Shown: piece after piece, positions 10,324 through 60,700 of the stretch
Layout of the letters: every line of letters begins with the position of its first letter
How positions within the stretch are numbered: the first letter of the stretch is position 1
NCBI GenBank assembly: GCA_965644495.1
Contig: CBFFSA010000001.1
Location: 124,001 to 188,000 of the forward strand
Source of the DNA: Perkinsela sp. CCAP 1560/9
Taxonomy: Eukaryota > Protista > Euglenozoa: Kinetoplastea
DNA: 64,000 bases
Reading direction: 5' to 3'
Translations under genes and position numbers: made by a program
Notes under the pieces: generated by a model
Told to the model about the DNA's origin: nothing
What the model saw: only the letters and a program-made list of their open reading frames with translations
The model's database searches: none

Positions 10324-10544
10324 CTTTCGAGAGATTTACGCATCGTACAAGAGTATTGCGGTGCATCGTTTCAACCCTCAATTGGAATTTGATTTGTTAC
10401 GTTGAGTTGTTGGGCGAAGTCAATCGACGCGCGCACGTACTGTGTTCCTTCATTTGCACACCACCCTTACTCTTTTCTCCTTTCCAGAGCTCTATTTCTC
10501 CCTCCTTTCTCCCTCTCTTTATTTTGCTCTTCTCCCCCCACCCC

Positions 10545-12218
10545 ATGTCCTCCCTCCTCCTCCCTCTCCTCCTCCTCTCCTCCCTCCTCCTTCCCCCTCC
10601 CTCCCCCCTCCCCATTTCCCTCACGGACAACCCCCACACCCACACGACCGCTCCCACCACCCGTCGACACAAACCCCTCCCCCCTACCCTCCCCCCTACC
10701 ACCACGAAAACCACCACCACGACACGTCGTGTCGGTACGCTCCCCGGTCCACCCCCTTCCTCTTCCTCTTCTTCTTCTTCTTCCTCCCACCCCCCTCCCC
10801 GTCCCCTCCTGCACAAACCCCCCGACGCGCCCTTATTCCAGGAACGTTCCCGTCTCTCCACCCACCCCTCCGCGGCCCCAAGTCGGCTCACCCCGATCAC
10901 CCCCGTCCGTGGTCGGCACCCCTCCCCCTCTTCGTCCTCGATGCGTAGCTCCCGCTCTTCTTCTTCTTCATCGTCTTCCTCTTCCTCTTCCCCCCACACC
11001 ACCGAGGAGGATATCATTCACCATTTAGTAGAGCTACTCGATCTCAACCTTAGCCGCATCCAAGAGCCCTACAGCCCCTGGGAGGCCCCCTCCGGGGTCC
11101 CCATGCGCATTGACGTGTTCGACCGCAGCAGCTGGTGGGACCTGGTCGCGGGGCGACGGAAGGTGTGTGTGCCGCGACCGGTGCTGCTGAAGATCCGTTT
11201 ACAGAGACGCTCCGAGAATGGACACGTGACCTGGGCCGACCCGTTTGAGGAGCAGGGGGTGGAGGTGAACACGGGGAGGCTGCGACGGGAGTTGCACTGG
11301 TTCGCACGGAGCTGGAAGACGCGTGCGGAGGCGGTGCTGGGGGATTGGGTGACGGCGCTGGTCGCGGGGGCGGTACGGAAGTATATCCGGCATGCGTTTT
11401 TTACGGTTCACTCGGAGTGTTTGGCGTGTGATGTGCTGCAGCTGCAGTGGTTTCATCAGGATAGTGTGATTTTGATTAGTGACGTGGACGGGTCGCAGAT
11501 TACGGATGTGGCGAAGTTCACCAATGGGCTGTTTCCCCAGCTGGATGGGATGGATACCACAGCGGATGCCACCACTGTGAACAACTTCCTCCACATGTAC
11601 GAGACCGTGATGGCCGGAGACGCGATCCGGGACTTTCGCTATCCTGCCTCCCGGGTACCACGTCCCGCGCTGGACTACGTCTATGCCTTTAACGCGCTGT
11701 TCTCTTCCTTCACCGCAGGGGATGTGCCGCGTCCGGCGTATGAGGACGACACCCCGGCGGCGTACCTCCCGTTTGAGCCCACCCTGCTGCCGATTCAAGT
11801 CGACCACCCGGGGGCTGTGGACGTGTTATGGTGTCCCAGTCGGCCGCACCCTACCCCATGCAAAGGTGCACTCCCACTGAGCTATGCGGTCTACAACGAG
11901 GAGTGCTTCGTGCTGGTAGACACCGGGAAGGCTGAGGGGCTGGGGATCCTCCGGCACCAGACCGGGGAGGTGTTCAGCGTGCGTGAGCGAGGTCGGTTTC
12001 TCCAGCGGTACGGGGAGGAGCCGTGCGCGCTCACGATCACGGACCCCGCCAAGCAGGTCTACCACCTGTCGCTGGAGGAGGGTGCGATTCTGCATTGCCT
12101 CCCCGTCAGTGAGAGCCACACAACGGAGCCCTTCCAGGAGGTGGCTCAGGAATGGGTGTATAACAATGTGAAGTTTATGGGCGGAGGTATGTGTGCAGTA
12201 GGCATACGGGGGGACTAA
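10545..12218 (+). CDS. Hypothetical secreted protein with Pro/Thr/Ser low-complexity N-terminus
   Basis: ATG at 10545 followed by a hydrophobic leader (MSSLLLPLLLLSSLLL); long open frame with a globular-looking C-terminal part. Confidence 0.7.
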   Translation: MSSLLLPLLLLSSLLLPPPSPLPISLTDNPHTHTTAPTTRRHKPLPPTLPPTTTKTTTTTRRVGTLPGPPPSSSSSSSSSSHPPPRPLLHKPPDAPLFQERSRLSTHPSAAPSRLTPITPVRGRHPSPSSSSMRSSRSSSSSSSSSSSSPHTTEEDIIHHLVELLDLNLSRIQEPYSPWEAPSGVPMRIDVFDRSSWWDLVAGRRKVCVPRPVLLKIRLQRRSENGHVTWADPFEEQGVEVNTGRLRRELHWFARSWKTRAEAVLGDWVTALVAGAVRKYIRHAFFTVHSECLACDVLQLQWFHQDSVILISDVDGSQITDVAKFTNGLFPQLDGMDTTADATTVNNFLHMYETVMAGDAIRDFRYPASRVPRPALDYVYAFNALFSSFTAGDVPRPAYEDDTPAAYLPFEPTLLPIQVDHPGAVDVLWCPSRPHPTPCKGALPLSYAVYNEECFVLVDTGKAEGLGILRHQTGEVFSVRERGRFLQRYGEEPCALTITDPAKQVYHLSLEEGAILHCLPVSESHTTEPFQEVAQEWVYNNVKFMGGGMCAVGIRGD

Positions 12219-12534
12219 GTGTATGTGTGTGTTAGGATTCGAGACGATGTTATAGCGCGGCATTTATAGATTGGGAGCACTGTTTTGTTGTCACGTTCCA
12301 TGTTAAAATACCAAAACACTAACTAGCTCCTTACAGCATATATTTTTGTATTTAGTCGCTGAGCCGGATTATTCATTACGGAGTTTTGGCTCCCAGATGA
12401 GGTTTCATTTGTAGTGTTAGTTCTAGTAAAAAAGCTTCTGAAACTTTCAGTCAACAGTACTTATTCGTTTACACCATCTCAAAGGCTTTACACCTCTTCA
12501 CTTTACTTTGTTTTACTTTGCTTTACTTGGGATC

Positions 12535-13005
12535 ATGCCCTTAAACTATTTCCGTGGGATTAGGCTCTCCGGCGCGGCGTCAGAAGGAAGTGCTTCAGGC
12601 TCGCAGAACATTTCGAATTCCAATGCTTTGGCGGGAGACCATCAAGGTTCCGATTTTTCACGAGGTTCTGACTTTGACCAACGTTCCGAACGCAATTCCC
12701 CTTTCAAAACGGAAGTTGAGAGAAGTATGACTTCTGGTCTACTCACCCCAAGTGAGATAACATTTCTCTCTGATCAGTCTCGCCGCGGCTTGCTGAAAGG
12801 ACCCAATCCAGTACGACGATATCTCAAGTTGAGAGCCGATAATGAAAAACCGTCTGCGCACCCTTTCGCAGGTTCCACCTTTGAAAACAGTGCTCCACGA
12901 CCTGAGGAGTTTTCGCCTCCGCCTGAATCGTGGATGGACAGTTTTGATCGTGCTTCACCCGTTCCTATGCCTGGGGACGCTCGACGGCGGTCTGTATCGC
13001 ACTAG
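12535..13005 (+). CDS. Hypothetical protein (disordered)
   Basis: ORF on the coding strand between two genes; first ATG at 12535. Confidence 0.5.
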   Translation: MPLNYFRGIRLSGAASEGSASGSQNISNSNALAGDHQGSDFSRGSDFDQRSERNSPFKTEVERSMTSGLLTPSEITFLSDQSRRGLLKGPNPVRRYLKLRADNEKPSAHPFAGSTFENSAPRPEEFSPPPESWMDSFDRASPVPMPGDARRRSVSH

Positions 13006-13168
13006 TACAATTTACAAAAAATGGGGGTTTGTGTCCTCTGTAGTTCGTTTAGTGTGTTTGCTTAACACTTTTTTTGCTCTAATTGTATGAAAGCACCAAT
13101 TATCAAATCATTGTCTTATTGAAGTGTTTAATGTATTTTATTCTTCTCGCCTCTCGAGTCTTCACAAA

Positions 13169-14629
13169 ATGCCACTTGATATAAATCTCTTTCGCATTGA
13201 GAAAGGCGGCAATCCAAATCTCGTACGTGAAAGCCAACGTCGCCGATGGAGCAATGTTAAACTGGTGGATGAGGTCATTGAGCTTGATACCCAATGGAGA
13301 CACGCCCAGCACTCCCTCGAAGGCATGAACAAATCCGTTGGACTGTGCAGCAAGAAAATCGCAACCGAAATGAAAAAATCCAAGAACACAGCGCCCTCTC
13401 TTGAGTCCCTGACGCTCACAACCGAACCGATCGAGCTCCCCCACGAGCTCCTCGAGTCCTGTCGCACCGGGAAGCTCATGATGGACAGCCTTGACTCCTT
13501 GACGGTACCAAAACTCAAAGCCCTCTCCAAGCACATCTCGTCCCATCTCGTCCCACAGGAGATGGAGCGTGCGAAGACGCTTGAGGCGGCACGAGACCGC
13601 GTACTCGCAGCCATCGGGAATATTGTCCACGAGTTTGCCCCGGTCCACGAGAGTGAGGAGCACAACGCTGTGCTGCGCACCCGCGGGGACTGTACCACAC
13701 GTAAACCCCAGCACCATGTGGACCTCATGGAGGCGCTCGGGGTGATGGACTGCAGCGAGCGCGTCACCCGGATGTCCGGGGGCCGGGCCTACGTGCTCCA
13801 CGGGGATCTGGTGCTCCTCCATGTCGCGTTGCTGCATTACGGGATGAGTTTTCTGGCAAAACGGGGCTATATGCCGTTCTACCCGCCGGTTTTTATGACC
13901 AAGGAGTGTATGGGGGAGGTCGCCCAGTTGTCGGATTTTGACGAGCAGCTCTACAAAGTCACCGGGGAGGGGGAGGATAAATATCTGATTGCCACCTCCG
14001 AGCAACCGCTATGTGCGTACCACCGCAACCGGTGGTACAATGAGGAGGACCTGCGGGTCCCGAAACGGTATGCGGGTTACTCCTCGTGTTACCGTAAAGA
14101 GGCCGGCAGTCACGGCCGCGACACCCTTGGTATCTTTCGTGTGCACCAGTTTGATAAAATCGAGCAGTTTGTGGTGTGTAGTCCCCGGGATGAAATCTCG
14201 TGGGCCGTCCATGAGGAGATGATGAAATGTGCGGAGGAGTTTTACACGAGTCTTGGGATTCCCTACCGGGTGGTGGATATAGCCTCCGGCGCGCTGAACA
14301 ACGCCGCTGCCCGGAAGTGGGATCTTGAGGCGTGGTTTCCTGGAAGTGGCAAGTTTCGTGAGCTTGTGAGTTGTTCAAACTGCACGGACTACCAGTCCCG
14401 TAGTATTGGGTGCCGGTATGGTCCCACCACCCGTGGGACACTGGCCTCCGCGCTGAAGGAACATCCACACATGCTCAACTCGACGCTTTGTGCAATACCA
14501 CGTACGATTTGTTGTCTTGTGGAGAATTATCAAACAGAGACTGGGGTGATGATACCAGAAGTGCTTCGTCCGTTCCTGCCCACTGTGAATGAAGAAATGA
14601 AATTCGTAACGAAAACGACGCAGGAATAG
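13169..14629 (+). CDS. SerRS: Seryl-tRNA synthetase (cytosolic type)
   Basis: MPLDINLFR...GGNP..VRESQRRR, YLIATSEQPL, CYRKEAGSHGRDTLGIFRVHQF, ELVSCSNCTDYQSR, HMLNSTLCA. Confidence 0.98.
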   Translation: MPLDINLFRIEKGGNPNLVRESQRRRWSNVKLVDEVIELDTQWRHAQHSLEGMNKSVGLCSKKIATEMKKSKNTAPSLESLTLTTEPIELPHELLESCRTGKLMMDSLDSLTVPKLKALSKHISSHLVPQEMERAKTLEAARDRVLAAIGNIVHEFAPVHESEEHNAVLRTRGDCTTRKPQHHVDLMEALGVMDCSERVTRMSGGRAYVLHGDLVLLHVALLHYGMSFLAKRGYMPFYPPVFMTKECMGEVAQLSDFDEQLYKVTGEGEDKYLIATSEQPLCAYHRNRWYNEEDLRVPKRYAGYSSCYRKEAGSHGRDTLGIFRVHQFDKIEQFVVCSPRDEISWAVHEEMMKCAEEFYTSLGIPYRVVDIASGALNNAAARKWDLEAWFPGSGKFRELVSCSNCTDYQSRSIGCRYGPTTRGTLASALKEHPHMLNSTLCAIPRTICCLVENYQTETGVMIPEVLRPFLPTVNEEMKFVTKTTQE

Positions 14630-14963
14630 ATGGTGCTTTACACTGCAATACTGGATCTAGAAGTTGCTGCAGATTCTAGATGCAGTCATGTTCGCAATTC
14701 AAAGATGTGAGTTGGGAATTCAGCTTGATACATTAAATTAAAGAAATAATCATAGCTGTCGTTCGACGTCGAATTCGACGTCGTTCGACGGTCGAAAGGT
14801 CGAAACATTTTGAGTGCTTGGGTGGTTTCTGAAAGAATTTTTTTTTAGCAGAATATATGTTTATAAAATGTTTAAAAAATGTATTTGCAATCAGTCTTCT
14901 ACTTTTTAGTGTTAAGTTACTTGTTTTTTCACAATACACACCTCTGTTCGAGGAAGGGGGCGC

Positions 14964-15539
14964 ATGATTCCTATCCGCGTACCTTCTCCCCCAGCTCTTT
15001 CATCAGATGCAATCGTGCCAACTTTAGCTGAAGCAAATTCTTCCGAATCTTTTTCATCTACTACTCCTTCAGTTACTTCGGTTCGTGCCAAGAGAACCAA
15101 TTTGGCGAAGAAGAATAGAACTGCCATGCAGCGAGATGCTTCCACGGAAGCAGCAGATGGTCCCACCCACAGCAGATTTGAAATTTCCGATAACGTTCCG
15201 TCAGGGAGTTATGTTCCTGTCTCAGTACGACGAGAGTGTACCGCGAGGCTCGAAGAGGAAATGTCGTCCTCTCCATCACAACAGGCAAGCTCTGTAAGGC
15301 AAGTAGTTCGAAAACAGCTTGTACAGGACCCAATGCGGTTTCCCCGTATTTTGACAAAATTCTTTCGTGAGCGCTGCTTGGGAATGGATACCCCGACTGG
15401 TAGAACGAAAGATTTGGAGAAGAAAAACAAAGAGTGTCGTGAATACGCCGAGAAATATCCTCGGTCCCATCACGTGAATAGGCCAGCGGACTCACATAAA
15501 ATGTCGCGACTGACCGTCGTGGAGTCATTCGCTCCATAA
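14964..15539 (+). CDS. Hypothetical protein
   Basis: ATG-started 191-aa ORF on the coding strand. Confidence 0.6.
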   Translation: MIPIRVPSPPALSSDAIVPTLAEANSSESFSSTTPSVTSVRAKRTNLAKKNRTAMQRDASTEAADGPTHSRFEISDNVPSGSYVPVSVRRECTARLEEEMSSSPSQQASSVRQVVRKQLVQDPMRFPRILTKFFRERCLGMDTPTGRTKDLEKKNKECREYAEKYPRSHHVNRPADSHKMSRLTVVESFAP

Positions 15540-16101
15540 CAACCATTACTATCACCATATCAATCACACTTGTTTAGTGCGCGAGGGACAGAGAATCGCA
15601 CCCGAACCGGAACTTTTTTCACTGACCCCGAACGACAATTCAATGAGTGTAAATGTTTTTGTCCGTCGCTGCGTTCCCTGTTTTGTGGCAAAGACGAACT
15701 TGTCATGCAAAGCAGCATACGCTTTACTTCGTAACTATGAACAATTACGCCCCAAGGGAGCAAATACTGAAGAAATTCTCAATGCACTTGGCAACAATCA
15801 CAGGATCATGCGTGATTGGGAGAAGGACTTGGCCAACGAAATATGGGAAAAAATGATTTCAAAAAGCGATATTATAATATTATTATTATAATACGAAAAT
15901 GACCTTCCGTTTTAGAAGAAATAGAACGAAAATTAGAGAGGTTATTTCGAACCTTTCATACATTTCTAAAAAGTATACGTAGTCCTACATTCTATCTATC
16001 GAGACGTGCATTGTAATGATTAATTACATGCCGGATATACTAGTACGTTTTCGTTTTTTACTTCCTCAGTTTTAATTATCAGTATCTATTTCCCTTGTTC
16101 A

Positions 16102-16293
16102 ATGCCTTCCAAACAAGGAGGAAAGCAGAAGCCCTTGAAACAACCCAAAAAACAAACGAATGAAGTAGACGATGATGATGTGGCATTTCAGAAGAAAAAA
16201 CAAGAGGAGGCAAAGAAAATTGCAGAGCTGGCTCAGAAGGTAAAGTCGAAGGGAGGTCCCCTTTCACAAGGAGGAATCAAAAAGAGTAAATAG
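16102..16293 (+). CDS. TMA7: Translation machinery-associated protein 7
   Basis: MPSKQGGKQKPLKQPKK...DDDDVAFQKKKQEE..K...GPL..GGIKKS. Confidence 0.93.
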   Translation: MPSKQGGKQKPLKQPKKQTNEVDDDDVAFQKKKQEEAKKIAELAQKVKSKGGPLSQGGIKKSK

Positions 16294-16661
16294 CTTTGTA
16301 CAATGCGCTATTACCCCATCAGACATATTGTGTGCCAGAGTATGATGAGCAATAGGTGTCATTTTGTCCTCTATAAAGGGTTGAGGTAGAATCTACGCCA
16401 CCTATTCGTTTGATGTATAGTTTGATGTTCCATATCGTATGCTTTGATTTTTACATTGTTTATGTACGTACAACACCATTCATAGGTATAAGCGCATTCC
16501 ACATAAATTTAATATCATTGCGCTATGTTATTTCATTGTTACCCCGTAAATTTATGCACACGAATGAGAAAAAGAGATAGGAATAGTATCAAACGCAGGA
16601 TTTTTGGATTATTTCTGCTTTTTAAGCATTCGGATATTTCAGAGACTTAATTTTTTCGTAA

Positions 16662-17207
16662 ATGGGAAACTCATCGAGCTCGGCTACTGCGGATGAGCAA
16701 AACAAGGATATAGTCGTTACCACAAGAACACACTCATCTCCTCTAGATGTACGTAATGATATTTCAATTCCTCGGCCTGATGTAACGCCGGACCGGAATA
16801 AGAGTCTAGCAACCTTAAGTGTTGGTCCTCAGATCGTTGCTCGGGAAGATCAAGCTGCGATTAACAAAGTAATTCAGAACATGGAAGGGCTTGATATTGG
16901 TCAGAGGCGACGGCGAGAACTTTCTGAACAGTGGAAATTTTACCTTGGTAGTGAACCTTTTCAGCGTGGAATTGACGCTGGACTGGTTCTAGGAGGTTTC
17001 GCTGTCGTAGGGATGTGTTTTTGGCCAAAAAACCGTGTACCCCAGCGTCTCATTCCGGTTTGGTGTGCGGGATTTGCGATCGGAATGATTTCATACCCGC
17101 TTTACATCATGTATAATGAAATAAATAATGAGGCACGCATGATGCATAGAGAAAAAACGATGTTTGCAAAACAGCGAGCGGAATACTTGGAAAAATTGAA
17201 ATCATAA
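16662..17207 (+). CDS. Hypothetical two-TM membrane protein with possible N-myristoylation (MGNSSS)
   Basis: Two hydrophobic segments and a C-terminal coiled region. Confidence 0.7.
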   Translation: MGNSSSSATADEQNKDIVVTTRTHSSPLDVRNDISIPRPDVTPDRNKSLATLSVGPQIVAREDQAAINKVIQNMEGLDIGQRRRRELSEQWKFYLGSEPFQRGIDAGLVLGGFAVVGMCFWPKNRVPQRLIPVWCAGFAIGMISYPLYIMYNEINNEARMMHREKTMFAKQRAEYLEKLKS

Positions 17208-17624
17208 CACTTATTGCGCTCTGACCCAGGATGTCTTTTTGGACTCCATTTCACCAAACAGTGTGGTAGCAACTATAACTCACATCTCATTAAGGAGTAA
17301 TAAGATTATAGGATTCTGGCACAAGGCAGTCTCCAGTCTTACGAAACATACCAAGCAGTGTATTATGTCAAGAAAGAGTCTTTTTAAATGTCTTTTTCCA
17401 GATTGCATACACTTCGTTTCGTCTAACCTATAGATTATGTAAGTCTTCTAATCCTATCTTATTAAGGTAGATACACGTAGATCATGTAGGCAGAGAAACA
17501 TGTAGGACAGGTAGACCTTGCATTTTTTTGTATATTTCAAATATACGAACAAAATATACAAACAATTCAAATATAACATTCGTACGTTTGTTGTAATTAC
17601 ATGGGTACCACTGTATAAGATATC

Positions 17625-18230
17625 ATGCCATACGAACACGTAGACCACACAGCAGACCTAATGTTGCACTGCTGGTCATATAATCTTGTCTCACTTTTGG
17701 AAGAATCAATACTATCCCTTTCCTCTGTGCTTCTGGGTGAATCCAGCGTACGTAACGTGACTATTTCGGACACTCATAGTAACGATAAACCTCAAGGTTT
17801 AGAGTTTAAAAGTACCTCACTGATTAAAGACATATTTTCTTCCGCACCTGATGAAACATCTATCTTGTACGATCTTCTTGAGCAATATTTGCACATATCC
17901 GCAACAAAAAGAGTAACCTGCTCCACTGTAAGAGTATTCCTTTTGGATAATATTATTGATTTACCTAAAAATACAAACAAGTCCTTTACTGATTTAGTTC
18001 AATCTCCCACTGACGTAAGTATCTCTCGACACAAATCGCAAATTCAGTGTGGCGCACGGTTATGGTGCATATCAAACAATGGAAATACTCCGGCTGGGGG
18101 CGAAGTCAAAGCGATAACAAAACACCGACTTGCTATATGGAAAGGCCCGAATACGTCCATACTAAATCGTACTGAGTTGATCACACCTTTAGAATCCTCG
18201 TATCACGCAACATTTGTTCTTGATGTATAA
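17625..18230 (+). CDS. Archease (RtcB tRNA-ligase cofactor)
   Basis: N-terminal YEHVDHTAD, EVKAITKH and C-terminal VLDV signature. Confidence 0.88.
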   Translation: MPYEHVDHTADLMLHCWSYNLVSLLEESILSLSSVLLGESSVRNVTISDTHSNDKPQGLEFKSTSLIKDIFSSAPDETSILYDLLEQYLHISATKRVTCSTVRVFLLDNIIDLPKNTNKSFTDLVQSPTDVSISRHKSQIQCGARLWCISNNGNTPAGGEVKAITKHRLAIWKGPNTSILNRTELITPLESSYHATFVLDV

Positions 18231-18396
18231 ATTTCAACCAGTTGTGTGTTTCCTTTATACGGCGTGTAATCCTTTATACGGCGAATCTTGCTCGTGTGTC
18301 CTTGTGTTTATATCGTATCTTCCTTCCGCCCGTATTTATTCCACAACGAATTGATATTTCGCACTCTTATTAAAAGTAACATTAAGGATTTATTTC

Positions 18397-20259
18397 ATGT
18401 CTGACGACGTAGAAACTCAAACGCCTGAGAAAAATCACGGCACCGAAGAAGCTGATGGGGATCGACGAAGCACACGCATACGGAGGGATGCAGTTTACTT
18501 TAGTCCGACGGCCGCGACACCAGTGCGCAAAGTGACGTATGAAGTCCCCGTAGACGGCAGTGGCGTACCTCTTAAAGTTTTCCCTGAATGGAAGAAAATA
18601 TTGCCTACAGATTGCACTCCTCTATACCGGATACTTGTTGGACGTCCCGGACTAAAGCAATCGCGAAAAAGAGAATTAATGAACTTCCGTGGCTTTCTGG
18701 GATCTAGTTCAACTAGAGGGATTACGGCTTCCCACTTAACTAAAGCGATTGAATCACAAACTCGTAAGGAACTTAAACCTATTCTAAAGACTTTCAGAAT
18801 TTTAGGGAAAACTGTAGCGGAGCAAAATCAACATTTGAGTGAGTTTTTGATGAGTCCTGTACTATCTCTTGATGCGCAAAAAAAGGAAAAGAGAACCGTG
18901 ACAAAGAAGAAAAGGAAAACTCGGAAAACCAATAAAAAGCTAAAAACTGTTTCCCGAATTAAAAGTGCCAAGGGACGATCTACGAAAACGCCCGCCAAGT
19001 CTGGCAAATCGGCCACAGCGAAGTCAAAGAAAACGGATACATCTCAAAAAAAGAAAGAACGTCCCACCAAACGAGGTAGAAGTGATAGCAAAAAGGAAGA
19101 GACACCACAGCCACCTGCCAAACGGCAACGCCAAGTTAAAGAAAAAAAGAGTGTGGTAGTTGAAGAAGTTATACCGCCTAATAATGAAATTCAGAACTTT
19201 ATAAGCACTATGATGCGTACTACCTCGGTTGAGGACGCCGAATCTCTTTCCCTAACGGCTGTCCGTTCTCGTATAGAGGCGCACTACAACCTTGCACAGG
19301 GCTCGCTCAAAGAGAAAGCCAATGAAATTCGTTCATTTATTGAACTTGCATTCGCAGAACTGGAAAAAATAGAGCATGGCGCAAGCGATTCTGCAACAAC
19401 CGCCGTGGCAATGCAAGAAATAGAAGAAGCAAGTCCTTTGAGTGAAACTCCGGCCGTAGAGCGAACTGTGGCGGAAGCCAGTGCTCCACCCGAGAAGACA
19501 CCGGAGTCCACTTCAGAAGAAATTGCATCATCTACTGTTGACAACATTATCGTAGCGCACCCACCCAGTACGCACTCCACTCCCATAAAGTCTCAAACAA
19601 AAGCGCCATCCGAACAGTCAACTCCGATTCGAGAGGCACCACTTACCCCCGAGCAAGCGCTCTCCGCACTGGCAACTCCCGCACGTGAAACGGCCACACC
19701 TGTGACAACTACTCCTTCACACCTCTCGAGTCCAGTGGTTCAGATCACTGCAGCTGTCACCCCGGAAACCACAAGCCGCAGGGCTCAAAGCACGGAGGCA
19801 CTCAGTTCGGTAAGTCCTGCGAAATCACCAGCTGCGTGTTCTCAACCGCTAGCCACTTCGGAGCCAACCGAAAGCGTTGTGGAAAACACGTCTGAGGTAT
19901 TAGGCGTTCCATCTGAAGCTGGACAGGATATGCAGGAAGAAGAAGTACAGAGCCGCTCTGGAGGGATGGCAGATCCTCTCAAGGAAGGAAAGGATGCCCC
20001 TGAGAATGCAGCGGTTGTGGATATAGCCGCGGTGAAGGTCAGTGTACCCGAGGTCAACGAGGAGAAAGCAATCCCACAAGAAGTAAGCACTCCCGTGGAG
20101 TTCACCCATGCTGTGACAGAAGAAACGACTCCTAACGAACCGTCTGATAGTGCAGATGAAGTCAATGTCTCAAAACCTCAGGTAGAGACGAGTACTCCAA
20201 CAGATTCCTCCCCTGAGAAATATCTTCCGGAAATTTATAGTCCAGACGAGGAAAATTAG
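18397..20259 (+). CDS. DEK-like chromatin protein with DEK-C domain and long S/T/P/E tail
   Basis: GSGVPLK...LYRILVGRPG....KRELMNFRGF (DEK core-like); PPNNEIQNFI...LSLTAVRSRIEAHY...LKEKANEIRSFI (DEK_C-like). Confidence 0.72.
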   Translation: MSDDVETQTPEKNHGTEEADGDRRSTRIRRDAVYFSPTAATPVRKVTYEVPVDGSGVPLKVFPEWKKILPTDCTPLYRILVGRPGLKQSRKRELMNFRGFLGSSSTRGITASHLTKAIESQTRKELKPILKTFRILGKTVAEQNQHLSEFLMSPVLSLDAQKKEKRTVTKKKRKTRKTNKKLKTVSRIKSAKGRSTKTPAKSGKSATAKSKKTDTSQKKKERPTKRGRSDSKKEETPQPPAKRQRQVKEKKSVVVEEVIPPNNEIQNFISTMMRTTSVEDAESLSLTAVRSRIEAHYNLAQGSLKEKANEIRSFIELAFAELEKIEHGASDSATTAVAMQEIEEASPLSETPAVERTVAEASAPPEKTPESTSEEIASSTVDNIIVAHPPSTHSTPIKSQTKAPSEQSTPIREAPLTPEQALSALATPARETATPVTTTPSHLSSPVVQITAAVTPETTSRRAQSTEALSSVSPAKSPAACSQPLATSEPTESVVENTSEVLGVPSEAGQDMQEEEVQSRSGGMADPLKEGKDAPENAAVVDIAAVKVSVPEVNEEKAIPQEVSTPVEFTHAVTEETTPNEPSDSADEVNVSKPQVETSTPTDSSPEKYLPEIYSPDEEN

Positions 20260-20819
20260 TCATCAATCTATGGTAGAATACCTTTGGATTTGAGAATTTC
20301 CGACATGCGGAATTGTGTCTATCAAAAATAATTTTAAGTATAAAGTTGTAGGAAGCGTGAGGATCACTGAGTATATCACAATACTTAGGTCTTTGTATAC
20401 AAAAATGTGTTCAAAGTACTCTTTGAACACAGCTGTAGCTTCCTAAAGTAGTTTTTTTAGCCAATATCTCTTTTGAAGGCTTTGTGAAGAATAGAGTGTG
20501 TATTAAATTTTGTCTTCAAAAAAATAGTTTGTATGGCATTAAAAATTCGGTTTTACAGAACGTTGTGTACACGCACTCCTCCTTTTTTAACTACTTTGCA
20601 ACTCACTTCAATGCGCACTCAACAGTAAAATAGTTCAGAATAGCATTTAACCTTGTGCTTCTATAGAGTAGGTTTTTAAATCCTACATGTGTATTCAAAA
20701 AAGTAGCGTTTTGCGGAGACATATTGTTTTGTATTTTTGTATTAATAAAAAAAATAACCTGTTGATCCATTCTTTTGATTTCCATCTCCTTACTAAAATT
20801 AATATACGGACAATAAATC

Positions 20820-21077: not shown

Positions 21078-21166
21078 GCGCAAGGTGAGACATCGTACTA
21101 TTTCATTATTTCCGCAGTGCTCACCTTGCGCTTCGTTCTTGCCATCTTTGGCGAAATCTGTTTACT

Positions 21167-28329: not shown

Positions 28330-29433
28330 ATGCGAAAAGAAAGAAGAAAACCTACGGGACTGACACTAGCGGAGGGTATGTGCCCTACTGAGGCAGAATC
28401 TCACCTCGGACTACGGATTACGGACACCCTTACACTTCAGATCGATCTCCCGCTAGCTAGAGAAGGAAATGGGGAGGATAGTCCCACACCTCATACCCAA
28501 GTGCGCGTAAAGCGGGATGGCGTAAAAAGAGATACCGAAAGCGCCACACAAAAGATACGATTCGAGGATTTGAAAATTGGCCAAGTTATCGGAGAAGGAT
28601 CACAAGCGAAAGTCCGCAAAGTACTTCACCCCGCAAGTGGCACCATATACGCCCTCAAACAACTAACCTTCAGCGATGACCGCGACGCCATGCGCAAAGT
28701 CCTCCAAACCGAACTCCGCAGTGTCGTCCTCATGCCCCCCCACCCCCACCTCGTGAAATCCTTCGAGGCCTTCTTCCGCAACGGGGTCCTCATGATCCTC
28801 CTCGAGCACATGCCCTACGGCACCCTCTGTGACATCTACCACCACACCACCACCATCCCCGAACCCCCGCTCTCCGTCATCGCCGCCCACCTCCTCTCCG
28901 GTCTCGTCTTCCTGCGCCACCAAAAAGTCGTCCACCGGGACATCAAACCCACCAACCTGCTCGTCTCCCCCACCGGGGTCACCAAGATCTCCGACTTCGG
29001 GGTCAGTGCCTACGTGCAGCCCAGCCGCCTCGACCTTACCCTGGCCCCCGTGGGGTCGACCCCGTACATGTCCCCCGAGCGGGCCCGCGGGGACCCGTAC
29101 TCGTACCCCAGCGACGTGTGGAGCGCGGGGGTGACCATCGCGGAGTGCGCCCTCGGGGCCTACCCCTTCGGCGCCCCCCTCAAGGCGATGGCCTTTGAGC
29201 TCAGCGCGGCGATCGCGGAGGCCCGGGTGGTGGTGGGGTGGGGGGAGACGGGGCCCTCGGAGGCGCTGCGGTCGTTCGTGGGGCTGTGCCTGACGCCGGA
29301 CCCCCGGGAGAGGCCCTCGGCGGAGACACTGCTGTCGCACCCGTTTGTGGTGGCGGGGAGGGGGGAGGAGGGGAGGGTGGAGGCGTGGTTGAGGGGGGTG
29401 TATGGGAGGGGGCAGGGGAGAGAGAGAGGGTAA
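28330..29433 (+). CDS. MAP kinase kinase (STE7 family)
   Basis: IGEGSQAKV, YALK, HRDIKPTN, ISDFGVS, VGSTPYMSPER, SDVWSAG. Confidence 0.9.
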   Translation: MRKERRKPTGLTLAEGMCPTEAESHLGLRITDTLTLQIDLPLAREGNGEDSPTPHTQVRVKRDGVKRDTESATQKIRFEDLKIGQVIGEGSQAKVRKVLHPASGTIYALKQLTFSDDRDAMRKVLQTELRSVVLMPPHPHLVKSFEAFFRNGVLMILLEHMPYGTLCDIYHHTTTIPEPPLSVIAAHLLSGLVFLRHQKVVHRDIKPTNLLVSPTGVTKISDFGVSAYVQPSRLDLTLAPVGSTPYMSPERARGDPYSYPSDVWSAGVTIAECALGAYPFGAPLKAMAFELSAAIAEARVVVGWGETGPSEALRSFVGLCLTPDPRERPSAETLLSHPFVVAGRGEEGRVEAWLRGVYGRGQGRERG

Positions 29434-29851
29434 GGTGTCGCAATGTTGTGAGCGGGGATGAAGGGTTGGGATGAGGGTGGGGGAGAGGGGTGAAGTTGCG
29501 GCCGTAGGTCAGGGTTGGGGCAACAACCTGGCGTTGTGGTGTTGTACGAAAACCGTAGCGGAACAATCAAGAAGCGGAACACGCTGTTCGTGCTTGTGGT
29601 CGGGTAGGAGAAATCGCTACATTGGTGTCGACCTAAATGCTCAAATTCCCCCGCAGTGAGCTTATGTTTTGTTTGGGCCTCATCGAGGGATACCTCGCTT
29701 CGGAAAAACCATAAAGGAGATTTTCCAAGTTCACAATTAGTGCCTTGTGCAGTTGTTGCGTTTTTTTAACATTTTTAACATGAAGTATTAAAATTCTCTG
29801 CGAAAAAATTAGTCTTTTTTTCAAGAAACAGTGCTCATAAACGGACATGTA

Positions 29852-45868: not shown

Positions 45869-46150
45869 CCCAATATTGCACAAAAAATATTTTTGTCGCC
45901 CCCGAAAAAGAATATTTGAGGACATACAATACTTCTGTTCTGAGATACAGGGGTGAAAACCTCGTGGTGGGGGGGGTCTAAAATTTGTAAAAATTGTTTA
46001 ATTTTGGTAAATAATAGCGCATTCGAGAGCTCTCGCAGAGTTGTATGTTTTAGCACTGATCTTTGTGTTTAGCACTGTATCTTTGTGTTGGGAAATTTAT
46101 GGCATCGAAAATTATAAAATACATTTTTTTTGAAAGTGTGCAATATTGGG
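45869..46150. mobile_element. piggyBac-type MITE (TTAA TSD, CCC...GGG ends, perfect 14-bp TIR)
   Basis: TTAA|CCCAATATTGCACA ... TGTGCAATATTGGG|TTAA; 282 bp, noncoding. Confidence 0.82.
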
Positions 46151-46304
46151 TTAATCTGACCCCCTTTTTTACTACCTTACCCTATTTTACTCACAAAGAA
46201 ACTATCCTTTCCTTTCCCTTATCTCTCCCCTCTCCCTCATCCTTTTTCACTTCCAAAACACTTTTTCTTTCCTCTCTCTTTCCCTTTCCCCTGTCCCCCC
46301 CTCC

Positions 46305-46877
46305 ATGTCCGTCCCCCCCGACACCGTCGCCCTCTCCAACCTCCACCCCCGGGTCGACGAGTCCCTTCTCTGGGAGCTCGCCACCCAGGCCGGCCCCGTG
46401 CTCGCCCTCGCCCTCCCCCGCGACCCCCTCGAGGGCACCCACCGCGCCCTCGCCTTCGTCACCTTCCGCACCCCCCGGGACGCCGCCTACGCCTGTGTCG
46501 TCCTCAACGGCACGCGGCTCTACGACCAGGCCCTACGGGTGGCCCCGAGGGGGGGGCCCGCGGAGGGGGCCGGGGGGGTGGGGGGTGAGGGGGTCAAGGG
46601 GGGGGGCTCCGGGGAGGTCTCCTATATCCATATCACGGGGTTGGACCCTGGGGTGGATGAGGCGGTCCTGGCGGAGACGTTCCGCGGGTTTGGGGGGTTG
46701 GTGGAGCTCCCGGTGGTGTATCGGGATGGGGTGACGGGGAGGAGTCGGGGGACGGCGTTGGTGGGGTATGGGAGTGTGGGGGAGGCGGAGCGGGCGATAG
46801 CGGCGATGGACGAGCAGTATTTTCATAATCGAGTGATACGGGTGGAGAGGAGTACGAGGAATGTGGTGAAAGGGTAG
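46305..46877 (+). CDS. Two-RRM protein, SF3B4/Hsh49-like splicing factor
   Basis: NLHPRVDESLLWELATQAGPV....PRD....H...AFV.F....DAAYA..VLNG.RLY; second RRM GLDP.VDE..L..TF..FG. Confidence 0.82.
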   Translation: MSVPPDTVALSNLHPRVDESLLWELATQAGPVLALALPRDPLEGTHRALAFVTFRTPRDAAYACVVLNGTRLYDQALRVAPRGGPAEGAGGVGGEGVKGGGSGEVSYIHITGLDPGVDEAVLAETFRGFGGLVELPVVYRDGVTGRSRGTALVGYGSVGEAERAIAAMDEQYFHNRVIRVERSTRNVVKG

Positions 46878-47138
46878 GGGGGAGGAAAGGGGGTTGAGAA
46901 AACCTCGTGGTTGTATTCTTTTTTGTGAGGGTTAGATTCCTGAGTCCCGTATGATATGTCAAGAGGTACGTTGCTGTTGTGAGGTGTTTTCTTTATCATG
47001 CTTCTATTTTTTTATGCTAGGTTAGGCACTATTTTCGTCATTTTCTATGAGGAACGTTCTTGGCTACGTCTGCGGAACTAAATTTTACTGTCTGACTCGA
47101 TAAGGGGGTTGTTGTCTACCACCGCTTTTCTACTCCTT

Positions 47139-51150: not shown

Positions 51151-51172
51151 TCTAGATTTTTTTGCCGTATTA

Positions 51173-53340: not shown

Positions 53341-53423
53341 TATACTTACATGCCCTATTCTGTACGTTTCTCGTATATTGTTAACACCTAGATAGTACCA
53401 CTTGTTTTGTTTTTCACTCTAAA

Positions 53424-54922: not shown

Positions 54923-57463
54923 ATGAGCAGAGTGGCTGACGGTCTATGGCGTTCGGAGGATATGGTATACGTACGGCTACAAATGCAACGTGAGACGGCG
55001 CATGAAACTATAAAACGTATTGGTCTTTTGGGTGTGGCAGAATTCATTGATCTGGAAAAGAACACCTCATGCCTCTCTCGAAAGTTTTCTTTAGAACTAC
55101 GACGCTGTGAGGAACTGGAGAGAAGGGTTGACTACTTGATAAGCCAGACCGATCAGATTGAATCTCCTGAGGATCACGGTTCTTGCATTCTCCCGCTTGG
55201 CCTTACTCAGGCAGCACCCACGCTGGACTCCTTGGATGCCAAACTAGAGGAGTACGAAAAGGACGTCCGGGACCTCAACGCAAAGTTCGAACAAATGAAC
55301 GCCGAGATGAATCGTAACCGCGAGTTCCACGAGGTGCTTCGCCGAGAGACTGCCTTCTTCCACGGCGGGGATGAGGAACTCACCAACCGCTCCGTTGAAC
55401 TCGCCTCTCGTGAGCTCCGAGAGCCCGAACGCGGGCTAAGTCTCCTTACCGGGGTGCTGGAGGACGACAAACTCCACGACCTGGAGAAACTCATCTACCG
55501 TGCCACCAAAGGGAACTCCTTTGTGCGGTTCGACCCCATTGAGGACACCTTCCTCGAGGGCCCAGGCCACTCCCCCCAACACAAAACCGTCTTTGCCGTG
55601 TTCTTCTCCGCTCCCCGGATTCACCAACGCCTCATGAAAGTGTGTCAAACCCTGGAGGCCAACCTCTACCCCTACCGTGAGGGGATGAGTGCCGCGATCC
55701 GCGCCCAGCTCACCAAACAGATCAGCGCACTGCGCCAAGCCCTGGCCGAGACCCAGCGCTGTCGGGACCAGACCCTCGCGGACGTCCAGCGCGAGATCCA
55801 CACCTGGAAGGCGTTGGTGCAGACCAAACGCGCAGTGTACCAAACACTCAACAAAATCACCTTTGCCGGGATGACCTGCGTCGCGGAGGCCTGGGTCCCG
55901 AAAGCGGAGCTCGGGGCGCTGCGTCGGGTCGTCACCGAGGCCGAGGTCGCGACCGGGGTGATGGCGAGTACGGTGGTGCAGGTGGCGCCCCCCGGGGCGG
56001 GGAGAACCCCCCCGACGTTCTTTAGGGTGGATAAGTACACCGAGACGTTCCAGGGGATTGTGGAGAGCTACGGGGTGGCGCGGTATAAGGAGGTGAACCC
56101 GGCGGTGCTTTCCGTGGTGACGTTTCCGTACCTTTTTGGGGTGATGTATGGAGATGTGGGCCATGGGGTGATGCTGACAGCTGTGGCGGTGTATCTGATT
56201 GCGCGGGAACGGTATTTTTTGCGTAACTCGCAAGGGGAGATGTTTGATATGATTTTCGGGGCTCGATATTTGCTCGTGTTGATGGGCGTCTTTGCGACTT
56301 ATATCGGGATGCTGTATAATGACACGTTTGGGCTTGTGCTTGGGGCTTTTCCCTCGGGTTACCAGTGGCTTCGAGGAGAAGGGCACGATTTTTTGTCTCA
56401 CGAGGAGTCGGATCTGTCTCCCACGCAAGGGTTCGTGACGTGGTTTGGGGTGGACTCCGCATGGGCAGAGACGGAGAACAAGCTGGAGTTTATGAACTCG
56501 TTGAAAATGAAAGGAGCAATTATTATTGGTGTACTTCAGATGTTCGCCGGGCTGTTCTTGGGGTTGTTAAATCATTTGTACTTCCGCGACTGGAAGCGAG
56601 TGTGGTTCGAATTTGTGCCAGAAGCTGTGTTTCTGATGTGTACCTTTGGTTACATGGCTATACTTATTCTATTGAAGTGGTGTACCGCTTTCGGTTCTAC
56701 GCATGACGCACCGTCCTTGCTAGAGACCATGACGAATTTCTTCTTGGCGCCAGGCACCGTACTACAGCCTCTGTATGCGGGACAAGCTGGGATGCAAGTT
56801 TTCCTTTTACTAGTGGCGTTTCTTATGATTCCCACGATGTTGTTTCCAATTCCTTACCTGGAGTGGCGAGCGCACAAGAAGCGGTGCTCCGAGGCAGCCG
56901 AAAAGGCACGCACTCTTCCCGTCACCGTTCGATCATGCACGCCTCAACCAGGTTCGCAGAACGTGTATGCCAGCGATAATACGGAACCTTTTATAGATGG
57001 CGACAAATCTCGAATGCCTATCCACGAAGTTGATACGGATGACGGTGGTGCGCACGATCTTGAGACTGTTTCCGTCCCCGCGTTTGACCTCAGTGAAGTG
57101 GTCATCCACCAAATGATTCACACGATTGAATTTGTTCTGGGTTGTGTGTCGAATACTGCAAGTTATCTTCGTCTCTGGGCGCTCTCCCTGGCACATGCAG
57201 AACTCAGTGAAGTTTTCTGGAATTTTGCCTTCTTGAAGGCATTAGACATGGATTCTGGAAATGGTGTGATCGTGTTCGTGGGGTTCGGAGTGTGGCTTAC
57301 CGTCACCATTGGTGTTCTTCTGATGATGGAAGGGCTTTCAGCGTTTCTTCATGCGCTACGTCTTCACTGGGTAGAATTTCAAAACAAATTTTATCTTGCA
57401 GATGGGAAGAAATTTTCACCGTTCGTAATCAGTGATGCAGCTTTATATGAGAGCTGTACTTAA
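54923..57463 (+). CDS. VPH1: V-type ATPase V0 subunit a
   Basis: RSEDM, PPTFF, YGVARYKEVNP, FPYLFGVMYGDVGHG, NSLKMK, HQMIHTIEFVLGCVSNTASYLRLWALSLAH, LRLHWVEFQNKFY. Confidence 0.97.
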   Translation: MSRVADGLWRSEDMVYVRLQMQRETAHETIKRIGLLGVAEFIDLEKNTSCLSRKFSLELRRCEELERRVDYLISQTDQIESPEDHGSCILPLGLTQAAPTLDSLDAKLEEYEKDVRDLNAKFEQMNAEMNRNREFHEVLRRETAFFHGGDEELTNRSVELASRELREPERGLSLLTGVLEDDKLHDLEKLIYRATKGNSFVRFDPIEDTFLEGPGHSPQHKTVFAVFFSAPRIHQRLMKVCQTLEANLYPYREGMSAAIRAQLTKQISALRQALAETQRCRDQTLADVQREIHTWKALVQTKRAVYQTLNKITFAGMTCVAEAWVPKAELGALRRVVTEAEVATGVMASTVVQVAPPGAGRTPPTFFRVDKYTETFQGIVESYGVARYKEVNPAVLSVVTFPYLFGVMYGDVGHGVMLTAVAVYLIARERYFLRNSQGEMFDMIFGARYLLVLMGVFATYIGMLYNDTFGLVLGAFPSGYQWLRGEGHDFLSHEESDLSPTQGFVTWFGVDSAWAETENKLEFMNSLKMKGAIIIGVLQMFAGLFLGLLNHLYFRDWKRVWFEFVPEAVFLMCTFGYMAILILLKWCTAFGSTHDAPSLLETMTNFFLAPGTVLQPLYAGQAGMQVFLLLVAFLMIPTMLFPIPYLEWRAHKKRCSEAAEKARTLPVTVRSCTPQPGSQNVYASDNTEPFIDGDKSRMPIHEVDTDDGGAHDLETVSVPAFDLSEVVIHQMIHTIEFVLGCVSNTASYLRLWALSLAHAELSEVFWNFAFLKALDMDSGNGVIVFVGFGVWLTVTIGVLLMMEGLSAFLHALRLHWVEFQNKFYLADGKKFSPFVISDAALYESCT

Positions 57464-57745
57464 GTAGCTTTGTACTGGAGCGCACGAACTATTATGTGCT
57501 TGTATGTACTCTGAGGTTACTCAAAATCTAAGACTGTTTTTGATATCCGGCGCATCCGAAATCGGATATGGGTAGCATTTGATTTGACGCAGCTTTCAAC
57601 CCTCTTATTGAGCAACCTTTTTTGCTGAAAACTGTCCTTTGGAAACGCTCAAATCATATAGATAATTTTGCGTTGTACATCCTTATTTACATTTACATTC
57701 TACATTCCACTAAAGACTTTTACTTTTAAAAAGACTCGTTTCTAC

Positions 57746-60700
57746 ATGTCTGCAGACAGGGGACGTGGCACAAGGGGTCGGGGATCTAAGGCTATGGCTA
57801 CTCCCACGCCGGCGCGTAACGTACACTCCGCGATACCTCCGCGAACCGTCTCGGCTCCGAATGACATCGGAAACCTTGCTCGAGCAGCACTTGTAGAACA
57901 GTCTTCCCGAGCCTCCCAAGGGAAGCCCATTCCCCCTGTTCGAGGTCCAAATCAACGTGACCCTCCTCCGAAACCGAAGTCAGGCAAGGGAGAAAAAGTA
58001 GAAGTCGTAGATAGCGGAGCACGAAAGAGCACAGCGGAAACCCAACCCGGACCACCTTTCTCCAGCCGTCCCAGAAAACCCGTCCTACACGAACCCACCG
58101 GACCAGCTGCGAGATATCCCGAAACCACCTACACCAACCCCCCACCACCATTCGTCGATCGCAGACACCCTCAGCACCCCCAACCGATTGGCTACTACGA
58201 CCATCCCCACCCCGAGGTTCCCCGCATGCACGCCTCCCAGCCGATGCAGCCTGTCATGCACTACGCTCCTCACTACGCTTCCCATCACTTTCCGCATGAC
58301 CCCTACGGGGGTACGCACGCGATCCCTGCAGGGTACGCCATGACCTATGGGGTTCGAGGCCCAGAAGAAATACGACACCCCGGGACTACTGGGGTTTTTT
58401 ACCCCCCGATGAGAATACCCCAACCCTCACCGGCATATCATAGGGATATGCCGGTCAAGGATGACACCTCTTTAGAAAGCGCTTCTGTACCGGCGATGCA
58501 GCCTGTCATGCACTACGCTCCTCACTACGCTTCCCATCACTTTCCGCATGACCCCTACGGGGGTACGCACGCGATCCCTGCAGGGTACGCCATGACCTAT
58601 GGGGTTCGAGGCCCAGAAGAAATACGACACCCCGGGACTACTGGGGTTTTTTACCCCCCGATGAGAATACCCCAACCCTCACCGGCATATCATAGGGATA
58701 TGCCGGTCAAGGATGACACCTCTTTAGAAAGCGCTTCTGTACCGGCGCCTGTGAGCGAACCACTGCAGCCTGTTTTGGATATCGTTATCACGGATGCCAG
58801 TGGGAGACGTCACGATCTGCAGGACTGGGTCGCGACCTCGGAACACAATAAAGAGGAGGAAGTAAGGGTTTCGGCAGAGGAAACGGACAAGACGTTGGAT
58901 GGGGAAGAAACGGGACTATCCAAGGATAGTGTTCCGAGCTCAGCGGAGGAAAAACACGGAGGTGAGGAAAAGGAAGATGAAAAAATATCTCATGATTCAG
59001 CTGAAAGGTCTGAAAAAGAGGGGGATATCACGGATTCTTCAAGGACACAAGATGTTTCACAGCATAAACAAGAAGAGAACAACGACGTTACACCCTCCAG
59101 CTCAGATGATATCTCAGAATCTATGGCTAACCTTAATATCTTATCAGCTCAGGAAACGCAATTATCCTCGAAGGAAGAAGTCGATACACAGGATCTTGTG
59201 GAAGAGCAAACGAGCTCTGCACAAAGGACACATAATGCAGGTACGGATGTATCCCCAGTGGATGCCATATTCGAGATGTTCTTGCGACATCGCAAAGCAT
59301 GGAATCCCGAGACATGTCCTCCGTTTCCCGGAGTCCTTGAAGTAAGACAATCTATAGAAATGTATAACAAGCGTGAAATGAAAGATAATGTTCTTGTGTA
59401 CCACGAACCTTCTCGCGAGGAGCATGCGATCATATTCGGAACCGAGGTAAACAGAGCGCACAGTGTACGAGATATATTCACAAACAAATCCGAGAATCCT
59501 TTTACACATCGCAATAGAAATCGAGAATCCGAATCTGAGGCAACTAAAAAGCATCTCCAGAGCATATTAAACAAGCTGTCCGAAGCGAATTACCGTTCGC
59601 TATGCACCGAACTGCTAAATACTAAATTTAATGCTCTATGTCGAGAACCCGAGTTTATGAAGGACGTTGTAAACATGTTCTTTGATAAAGCTATTAACGA
59701 AACAGCCTTTGCGCCTCTTTATGCACAATTTTGTCAGGACATTTATGCACACTGGAAAAGACAAGCGGTGGAGGATCGCTCTGATCCGACAGACAAAAGT
59801 ACACACCAATCTACGACGTTTCGCCGACAGCTCCTTGAACATTGCAGAGAAGCCTTCATGAGCGGCTCTCATGTGCAGAGCGATCCCCTTAGCGAGGTCA
59901 AGGAGGTCCCAGCAATGGACGATCCAGTCCACTGGAAACGCACCGTCGGAACTGTGAAATTTATAGGTGAGCTTTTCAAACTTCGACTCATAGCGAAAGG
60001 CATTATGCATGAAATCTCTTACAAAATGCTTTTTAGTCCTCTTACTGATAGAATGAGGGATAATTCTTTACTCCTTTTTTGTGAGCTGATGGAATCTATT
60101 GGTCCGCTTCTTGAAAACTCTGAGTCGGAAGTAGGGAATATGCACATTTACTTCGAGAATGTTTGTGTACTCTCCGCTACCTATCCCAACATTCGCGTCC
60201 GATTTAAGCTTCTCAATTTATTGGAACTTCGACAACGTGACTGGGCAGGAGTTTCCAGCACAGCGCTGAGTAAAACATATGGTCCGTACTCCCAGGCTAT
60301 GCCATCACAAGAGATTTCGTCGAAATCCGTCATGAGTTCCTCCGCTTCTCGGCCCGTACCGCCCCACTCCACGGGCAACTATGCCCGGCCTTCCTTGCGC
60401 GGAAGTCGAAGAGAGAACGAATCCCCTAGTCGTGGTAGCTACGCTGAACGTATGGTATCACCACTGGCGCCTAACACTGCGAAATCTTTTCCTGCCGTCC
60501 GATGCGTCCTGTCGAGGACCTCCAGCGAACGATCGGATCTCTCGGCAATGAAACTACCAACGAGGTCCTCGTCTTCCGATTTGGATTCTGTACTCAATAC
60601 ACCCGACATTAACGCTAGACTTTCGAATTTGGGCTCAGCGACTACCGACCAGATTACACAAAAACTCGAGGAGAAAGCTATGATGGCATTACAGGAAAGT

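Follow-up and report, generated by a model that had tools for sequence, protein, structure and literature searches.

Which process turns the coding strand of a gene from C-rich to G-rich at a sharp point within its reading frame? This question is raised by the 64,000-nucleotide stretch of DNA analysed here (the window), taken from a 21-Mb prokinetoplastid host genome that is close to the amoeba symbiont Perkinsela. GC-rich islands are found in it, each about 1.1 kb in length and lying in one gene around a central zone of 200-300 bp.

Islands of the window

For each island, a flip test was performed with 200 within-gene shuffles of the letters at fourfold-degenerate (4D) sites. The four strong islands (at about 11150, 29150, 46540 and 55900) exceeded 200 of 200 shuffles, with D values of 0.82-1.42 against null maxima of 0.54-0.78, and the GC content of their 4D sites is 0.75-0.98, compared with a background of 0.41 (Table 1). 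At these four switches, the skew reported in the preliminary description is thus kept at silent sites, whereas those placed near 13740 and 58600 proved to be weak. A separate switch at 11890 has no 4D flip of its own and belongs to the GC-rich tail of the 11150 island, and the weak island suspected at 19800 lacks a 4D signal and lies outside the island system.

Table 1. Coordinates of the islands and related features of the window (p values from the flip test)
Feature	Position	Centre	Gene (strand)	4D sites
Strong island	10545..11500	~11115-11190	Hypothetical ORF 10545-12218 (+)	left C61/G13, right G56/C10; p<=0.005
GC-rich tail of the 11150 island	11500..12218			profile 34 34 35 25 35 (tenths C, G)
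GC-rich, weakly polarised island		~13650-13740	Seryl-tRNA synthetase (SerRS) 13169..14629 (+), Pfam	GC4 0.8; p=0.13
Supposed weak island at 19800	19350..20100			amino-acid composition only; p=0.98
Strong island	28550..29530	~29105-29215	Protein kinase 28330-29433 (+), Pkinase	GC4 0.98; p<=0.005
Strong island, filling its gene	46150..46900	~46515-46560	Two-RRM gene 46305-46877 (+), RRM_1 match with two stretches	left C47/G4, right G57/C13
Strong island	55250..56450	~55840-55945	V-ATPase subunit a 54923-57463 (+), Pfam	p<=0.005
Weak island	57950..58900		MIF4G (eIF4G-like) 57746-61579 (+)	p=0.06

The G-rich arm of the protein kinase island extends about 100 bp beyond the stop, and the island in the gene for V-ATPase subunit a stops mid-gene. 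In the arms of the latter, 25% of the conserved residues were changed, compared with 11% in the rest of the gene (p=0.001); no excess of changed conserved residues was found in the SerRS island. A homologue of the C-terminal part of the hypothetical ORF is present in a syntenic locus (L025), and a tandem duplication of 252 bp, perfect in sequence, spans 58242-58747 inside the weak MIF4G island. The stretch 10811-14780 is identical in contigs of the runs X1 and X3 and mostly covered by X2, and the contigs of these three independent runs match the first island from 10811 onward, which rules out an assembly artefact for this one stretch that was tested. The samples are near-identical, X4 differing by only four G-to-A/T changes within or beside island genes, which are too few sites to judge from polymorphism whether the allele-frequency spectrum is biased. 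In agreement with the earlier claim that the islands share no sequence, there were no cross matches among those of the window, which rules out a repeat family or mobile element, and inspection of k-mers revealed no common centre motif. No non-coding RNA or tRNA was found here.

Composition of the two arms

At 4D sites, the strand that runs outward 5' to 3' from the centre has gained G and lost A, T and C. In the frame of this strand, the letters of the right arm are G.60, C.17, A.12 and T.11, those of the left arm are G.61, C.15, A.16 and T.08, and the odds of G are raised about 4-10-fold, identically on either side of the centre. A and T are both reduced to about 0.05-0.2 on both arms, with no T/A flip at 4D sites, so that of the change from C/A to G/T that had been described only the C-to-G part stands. 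Skew at 4D sites is also absent beyond about 1.5 kb, without any long-range sawtooth between islands; thus the classic origin signature that had been invoked is not borne out. The effects of sequence context are mirrored, although one arm is sense and the other antisense: G at position -2 raises G (OR 1.8 and 2.0 on the two arms), and C at +1/+2 reduces it (OR 0.64/0.40 and 0.31/0.67). At twofold pyrimidine sites, C on the right arm equals the background (0.41 versus 0.41), twofold G on the left arm is only 0.55 versus 0.38, and amino acids are shifted in the islands as well as silent sites. Mirror-image arms in which A and T are both depleted are at odds with C/A-versus-G/T deamination and with symmetric GC-biased conversion alike, and cytosine deamination on single strands is ruled out by the missing rise of T at 4D sites. 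The 4D composition does support the earlier proposal of strand-asymmetric substitution with GC gain at fixed sites.

G4 motifs cluster in the islands and, as had been noted, occupy opposite strands: 21 of 22 plus-strand motifs sit 5-347 bp to the right of a centre, and most minus-strand motifs just to the left of one. Once it enters non-coding DNA, the skew dies away within about 150 bp, which, together with the intragenic centres described below, contradicts the claim that it ignores gene boundaries. A faint GC-skew tail in non-coding DNA reaches 1.5 kb (p=0.003) and perhaps 4 kb (p=0.05). A process entering from the spacers is ruled out, because the adjoining DNA has no opposite skew at 0.9-1.5 kb. 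Very probably, a strand-polarised process running outward from the centre underlies the islands.

Genome-wide distribution, relatives and the fungal precedent

In the 258 kb examined, 16 strong islands were found, and all 16 centres lie within CDS, at least 250 bp from either end; island centres favour gene middles (P=0.001), a preference that is partly detection bias. The gaps between them range from 1.2 to 48 kb (CV 0.7), which rules out periodic spacing such as the 17-18 kb noted before between the three strongest centres, and the island density is one per 16-35 kb. Genome-wide, a codon-periodic pattern matched 4064 times in the C-to-G and 328 times in the G-to-C direction, so that the polarity holds for the genome as a whole, and extrapolation gives a total of roughly 600 islands. 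This pattern was used instead of the homopolymer pattern C6..G6, which is weak (784 versus 498) and swamped by intergenic repeats, and raw counts of C-to-G versus G-to-C steps mislead and are uninformative because G-to-C steps arise at island edges. A test of polarity on the minus strand is empty, since C-left/G-right is its own reverse complement; the three minus-strand ORFs that were checked are transposons, and there is no true strand-switch region among the DNA examined. A search of the kinetoplastid literature did not yield the pattern, but absence there is no proof that it is undescribed.

In two Perkinsela-like metagenome assemblies, the same C-to-G polarity is spread, in a weaker form, over whole genes: the gradient is present in 10 of 10 genes of contig L024 (p=4e-30), and gene-long C-to-G skew was found in L030 (p=9e-9) and, at p values of about 1e-4 to 4e-4, in L021 and L031. 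The genes with gradients include orthologues of the island genes SerRS, eIF5, BOP1 and, partly, RPL18, and the SerRS orthologues of two assemblies have the gradient along the entire gene. In the genome studied here, 59 non-island genes have no end skew, the islands of BOP1 and V-ATPase lie mid-gene with background on either side, and conserved housekeeping genes are common among those with islands.

In unicellular fungi, opposite GC skews have been reported at gene ends, and deamination was argued against (McLean and Tirosh 2011, PMC3315797). Like the islands, the fungal skew runs from C to G on the coding strand, is seen at 4D sites, in amino acids and at the edges of UTRs, and hardly involves A/T. 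However, many genes carry it and its anchor points are the gene ends, whereas the islands are compact, occur in a minority of genes, have a large GC gain and, in long genes, bear no relation to the ends, other genes being flat. Judged from the 59 flat genes and the internal islands, anchoring at start and stop is thus absent here; it is present in the Perkinsela-like contigs. As composition changes from C to G along genes in fungi and in these assemblies, the earlier statement that transcription of one strand cannot produce a change of sign was too strong.

Possible replication initiation and its rivals

The process running outward from the centre may be replication initiation, the likeliest of the readings considered, although we regard it as possible rather than probable. 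A DNA-level process would start at fixed intragenic sites and work about 0.5 kb outward in both directions, fading at AT-rich spacers. An error or repair regime of its own would govern the first stretch of each fork as it is synthesised or exposed, the source of G being either misinsertion of G on the new leading strand or insertion of C across from lesions of the exposed lagging template, and the site may in turn be strengthened by the G4 motifs that result on the outward strands. The mirrored composition and context effects of the arms count in favour of replication initiation, as does the faint non-coding tail, and the upward jump of G skew with G4 motifs on outward strands is that expected of an origin defined by skew. 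The observed density is also plausible for origins. The L. major origin sites marked by AcH3, base J and KKT1 share the local switch of G skew from negative to positive and the G4 layout (reverse strand upstream, forward strand downstream), head-to-tail regions included (Damasceno 2020, PMC7511235). However, those sites occur once per chromosome, between transcription units and with T skew, whereas the islands number hundreds, all in CDS and without T skew; this difference in number and location counts against replication initiation, and a skew-defined origin would not be expected to lack T skew and 4D skew beyond about 1.5 kb. The T. brucei origins located with stranded SNS-seq are, like the islands, local and flanked by strand-specific G4 motifs, but they are intergenic, have poly(dA)/poly(dT) and show the opposite G4 polarity (PMC13179062). 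Their location and polarity are a further argument against initiation, and they are closer to the spacers of the Perkinsela-like assemblies than to the islands. Gene-middle centres and the gene-long version in the relatives also speak against it, as they tie the pattern to gene units, and we know of no origin footprint with a strong GC gain.

Recurrent hotspots of double-strand breaks or gene conversion, meiotic or mitotic, are somewhat unlikely as the source. Repair synthesis could refill a resected tract on the outward-running strands, adding G, or heteroduplex repair could be biased towards G on the donor-derived strand, in effect GC-biased conversion that is polarised by strand. An extent of about 1 kb, the GC4 of up to 0.98 and the overwritten amino acids are hallmarks of conversion-driven fixation, and, as in a gBGC hotspot, the kilobase GC peak overrides protein constraint in V-ATPase, though not in SerRS. 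Judged by family matches, the genome probably encodes three Y-family polymerases and, as putative machinery for meiotic breaks, a Spo11/TopoVI-A family gene (TP6A_N) and Mnd1. The meiotic hotspots of mammals, where gBGC and asymmetric mutagenesis occur, resemble the islands in kilobase scale, mirror-asymmetric substitutions and GC gain, the asymmetric mutation of human hotspots lying within 2 kb (PMC7615360). However, ordinary gBGC is strand-symmetric, whereas the GC gain of the islands is almost all polarised, and the background level of twofold-site C on the right arm argues against a strand-symmetric weak-to-strong gain. From the geometry of resection, damage to resected single strands should yield the opposite polarity, and hotspots without PRDM9 usually occupy open intergenic chromatin.

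A skew linked to transcription is unlikely in our estimate; it could be the fungal 5'-C/3'-G gradient in a compressed and strengthened form that some genes have, or it could arise when bidirectional internal initiation or R-loops turn each non-template strand G-rich. The fungal precedent, the gene-long skew of the four Perkinsela-like contigs and the confinement of islands to CDS argue for it. In addition, G-rich coding strands work as promoters in T. brucei, where the G-rich strand of GT-rich promoters runs along transcription and a divergent pair gives C-to-G (PMC5579346). These points are countered by the missing end skew of the 59 genes, by the mid-gene islands of BOP1 and V-ATPase and by the mirrored context effects, which one-way transcription does not predict. 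Moreover, kinetoplastid genes are not individually initiated. Trypanosome GT-rich promoters differ from the islands in being non-coding, rich in G and T and few per chromosome. A trypanosome transcription start region would be GT-rich, marked by H2A.Z and located between transcription units; in the DNA examined, 16 of 16 island centres fall within CDS and are not rich in T. Selection, whether for G4-forming DNA as a chromatin signal, for codon use or for a hairpin formed in the mRNA by pairing of the C and G arms, is very unlikely, in spite of the clustering of G4 motifs in islands and the many conserved housekeeping genes among their hosts: the folding energies of six islands, with z of -1.2 to +1.9 relative to local synonymous shuffles, are no better than theirs and leave the hairpin unsupported, a hairpin would tolerate either polarity, codon preference cannot reverse mid-gene, and the arms lose conserved residues.

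It is a serious possibility, if somewhat short of probable, that initiation or breakage occurs in this lineage at hundreds of fixed sites within genes, where a hitherto undescribed, strand-polarised process of N-to-G mutation or conversion rewrites codons and amino acids and builds its own G4 flanks. If true, sequence by itself would suffice to locate origins (or hotspots), and a diffuse form of the same process might account for the 5'-C/3'-G gene skew that is so far unexplained in fungi and related symbionts. How kinetoplastids specify their origins and recombination sites is not settled, published origin maps differing even on G4 polarity, and several hundred sharply marked sites provide direct coordinates to set against maps of origins, breaks and RNA starts. 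A G-gaining, strand-polarised process of such strength is explained by neither deamination nor ordinary gBGC, and its practical effects for the lineage are distorted codon statistics, long false antisense ORFs and biased protein phylogenies.

Intragenic islands with a fixed polarity

Sixteen strong islands, that is, GC-rich tracts of about 1 kb that are C-rich left of the centre and G-rich right of it, were found in the 258 kb surveyed (C1:1-258000, which includes the window at C1:124001-188000) of the 21.0-Mb, 110-contig assembly from which the window was taken. The affected genes include those for BOP1, RPL18, eIF5, DnaJ, a flippase, an AAA ATPase, a RING protein and others. All centres lie within coding sequence (chance expectation about 1e-4), at least 250 bp from both CDS ends and biased toward gene middles; detection at fourfold-degenerate (4D) sites requires coding sequence on both sides of a centre, and the same strong centres were recovered by an all-site scan. 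A codon-periodic pattern yielded 109 C-to-G versus 0 G-to-C matches locally, and 4064 versus 328 genome-wide. By extrapolation from its local hit rate, the genome would hold about 600 strong islands.

In the window, where the identified genes are on the + strand with uninterrupted reading frames, GC peaks at 0.6-0.75 in sliding windows, with skew negative to the left (about -0.2 to -0.8) and positive to the right (+0.3 to +0.6). The preliminary description had proposed eight switch points, and those near 11120, 29180, 46545 and 55900 hold, with 4D flips at ~11115, 29215, 46515 and 55943 that beat every within-gene shuffle. The SerRS island at 13740 has a high GC content and flips weakly (p=0.13), the flip at 58600 is marginal (p=0.06), the switch at 11890 is the tail of the first island with no flip of its own, and the weak island at 19800 carries no silent-site signal. 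The spacing of 17-18 kb proposed for the three strongest centres gives way to irregular gaps across the 258 kb, and the view that the islands have no common sequence was borne out, as neither a shared motif nor similarity was detected among them. Contigs from independent runs reproduce window 10811-14780, one sample showing four differences in or beside island genes.

Outward-strand gain of G

The 4D background is C.20, G.21, A.28 and T.32. At 150-300 bp from the centre, the mean over the 16 islands is C.65 on the left and G.68 on the right, the two crossing over in a zone of 200-300 bp rather than at a single point. The fixed C-left/G-right polarity claimed earlier stands, but its A-left/T-right counterpart does not, since A and T both drop to.05-.09 in the core. 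All four bases are back at background by ~900 bp. Nor does the skew ignore gene boundaries: besides the coding location of all strong centres, non-coding DNA is less affected at equal distance (G.39 versus.62 at 250-400 bp) and is close to background by 400 bp.

Both arms are equal in composition and neighbour effects on the strand leading outward, one arm being sense and the other antisense, and twofold sites on that strand gain G and gain little C over T. Therefore, the change is from any base to G on the strand leading outward, which fits neither a C/A-versus-G/T deamination skew nor a GC bias equal on both strands. From equilibrium composition alone, faster G gain cannot be told apart from slower loss or fixation bias. 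G4 motifs track the arms, and folding revealed no advantage for island sequence. The proteins are marked as well: Pro is 11.2% in left versus 4.5% in right arms and Gly 4.3 versus 11.1%, with Leu accompanying Pro and Val accompanying Gly. In V-ATPase, 25% of conserved residues are lost in arms versus 11% elsewhere (p=0.001); SerRS showed no excess loss of conserved residues.

Relatives and repeats

SerRS shares 60-65% identity with PhM-4, Perkinsela and unnamed sequences, and in its tree it groups within Prokinetoplastina, in a clade with Perkinsela (support 97/97). L025, the nearest sequence, shares synteny with window 11682-23770 and has no islands in that stretch, and skew in Perkinsela CCAP 1560/4 is nearly flat. 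Two Perkinsela-like long-read assemblies have the same polarity, but extended along whole genes: every gene of the metagenome contig sequence L024 shifts from C to G (p=4e-30), L030, L021 and L031 show similar trends, and the spacers of all four run G to C. L024 and L030 belong to ctg31362 of ENA assembly ERZ25074155, and L021 and L031 to ctg580673 of ERZ25071330. This gene-long 5'-C/3'-G skew is much weaker in L026 and L027, which are other contigs from the same samples. Orthologues of the island genes SerRS, eIF5, BOP1 and RPL18 are GC-high in these assemblies and most are polarised, four genes being too few to test conservation; BOP1 skew is gene-long there versus a compact mid-gene island here.

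Strong islands adjoin two of the three MITE-like spacer elements listed below. The mobile-element matches comprise DDE transposases of Tc1/mariner-like and pogo-like type, a reverse transcriptase of non-LTR type and a weak match to CENP-B_N, and a DDE_3 gene lies in L030; DNA transposons are seldom reported in kinetoplastids (PMC8101967). The two JBP/TET-family genes indicate that base J synthesis is probably present. The gene at 23254 is ribosomal L16 by its L025 homologue, and the inverted copy of its start, beside a 200-N gap, is possibly an assembly duplication.

Repeats, mobile elements and JBP/TET-family genes (L-numbers, further sequences; C1 and C5, contigs of the window's genome, G000)
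Feature	Location	Observation
MITE-like spacer element	window:45864-46155	inverted arms 19 nt
MITE-like spacer element	window:29846-30625	inverted arms 35 nt
MITE-like spacer element	window:35504-35945	inverted arms 34 nt
Mobile-element gene	L010:2566-3651 (-)	
Mobile-element gene	L002:2218-4275 (-)	
Mobile-element gene	L018:2412-7253 (-)	
Candidate mobile-element gene	window:51388-52755	
JBP/TET-family gene	G000:C1:1182247	
JBP/TET-family gene	G000:C5:179371	
Multi-copy element, ~1.1 kb	window:14760-15870	contig depth ~5x flanks; copies ~3% diverged; palindromic left end; no Pfam match for its ORFs
Inverted copies of the start of the gene at 23254	window:6297-6543 and 23127-23373	99% identical
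27-bp tandem repeat family	window:63376-63664; L019:3200-3900; near C1:241.2-241.9 kb	array near C1:241.2-241.9 kb larger
Non-coding repeat unit	L013:300-1200	recurs every ~550 bp; G- and C-rich blocks; no Rfam match
Tandem duplication, 252 bp	window:58242-58747	perfect, in frame, in MIF4G gene; recent event or assembly artefact

Candidate processes

The geometry narrows the candidates to an origin, a repaired break or two-way transcription; the G-gaining strand would be the new leading strand (and exposed lagging template) in the first case, the newly filled strand in the second and the non-template strand in the third. A resected overhang in that role is ruled out by the geometry. Replication initiation at island centres is ranked first, as a tentative reading, because Leishmania major origins share the polarity and G4 layout of the islands (PMC7511235). 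However, a long-range skew gradient is absent around the islands, and Trypanosoma brucei origins, which are intergenic and of opposite polarity (PMC13179062), also count against it.

Polarised break repair or conversion would account for how wide and how strong the islands are, and the genome has Spo11-family, Mnd1 and Y-family genes, but it requires a strand bias of an undescribed kind and appears somewhat unlikely. A transcription-linked origin of the skew, which has a fungal precedent (PMC3315797) and the gene-long skew of the relatives in its favour, would not predict the mirrored context and internal position of the islands, and is less probable still. Selection is an improbable explanation.

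Since C-to-G skew along genes has been published for fungi (PMC3315797), and Leishmania origins are reported to flip locally from C to G (PMC7511235), the pattern is not categorically new. One literature search found no report of such islands in kinetoplastids. The form seen here is compact, intragenic and mirror-symmetric, gains GC and recurs hundreds of times; it departs from each known class on a defining test, and the island pattern is real and surprising.
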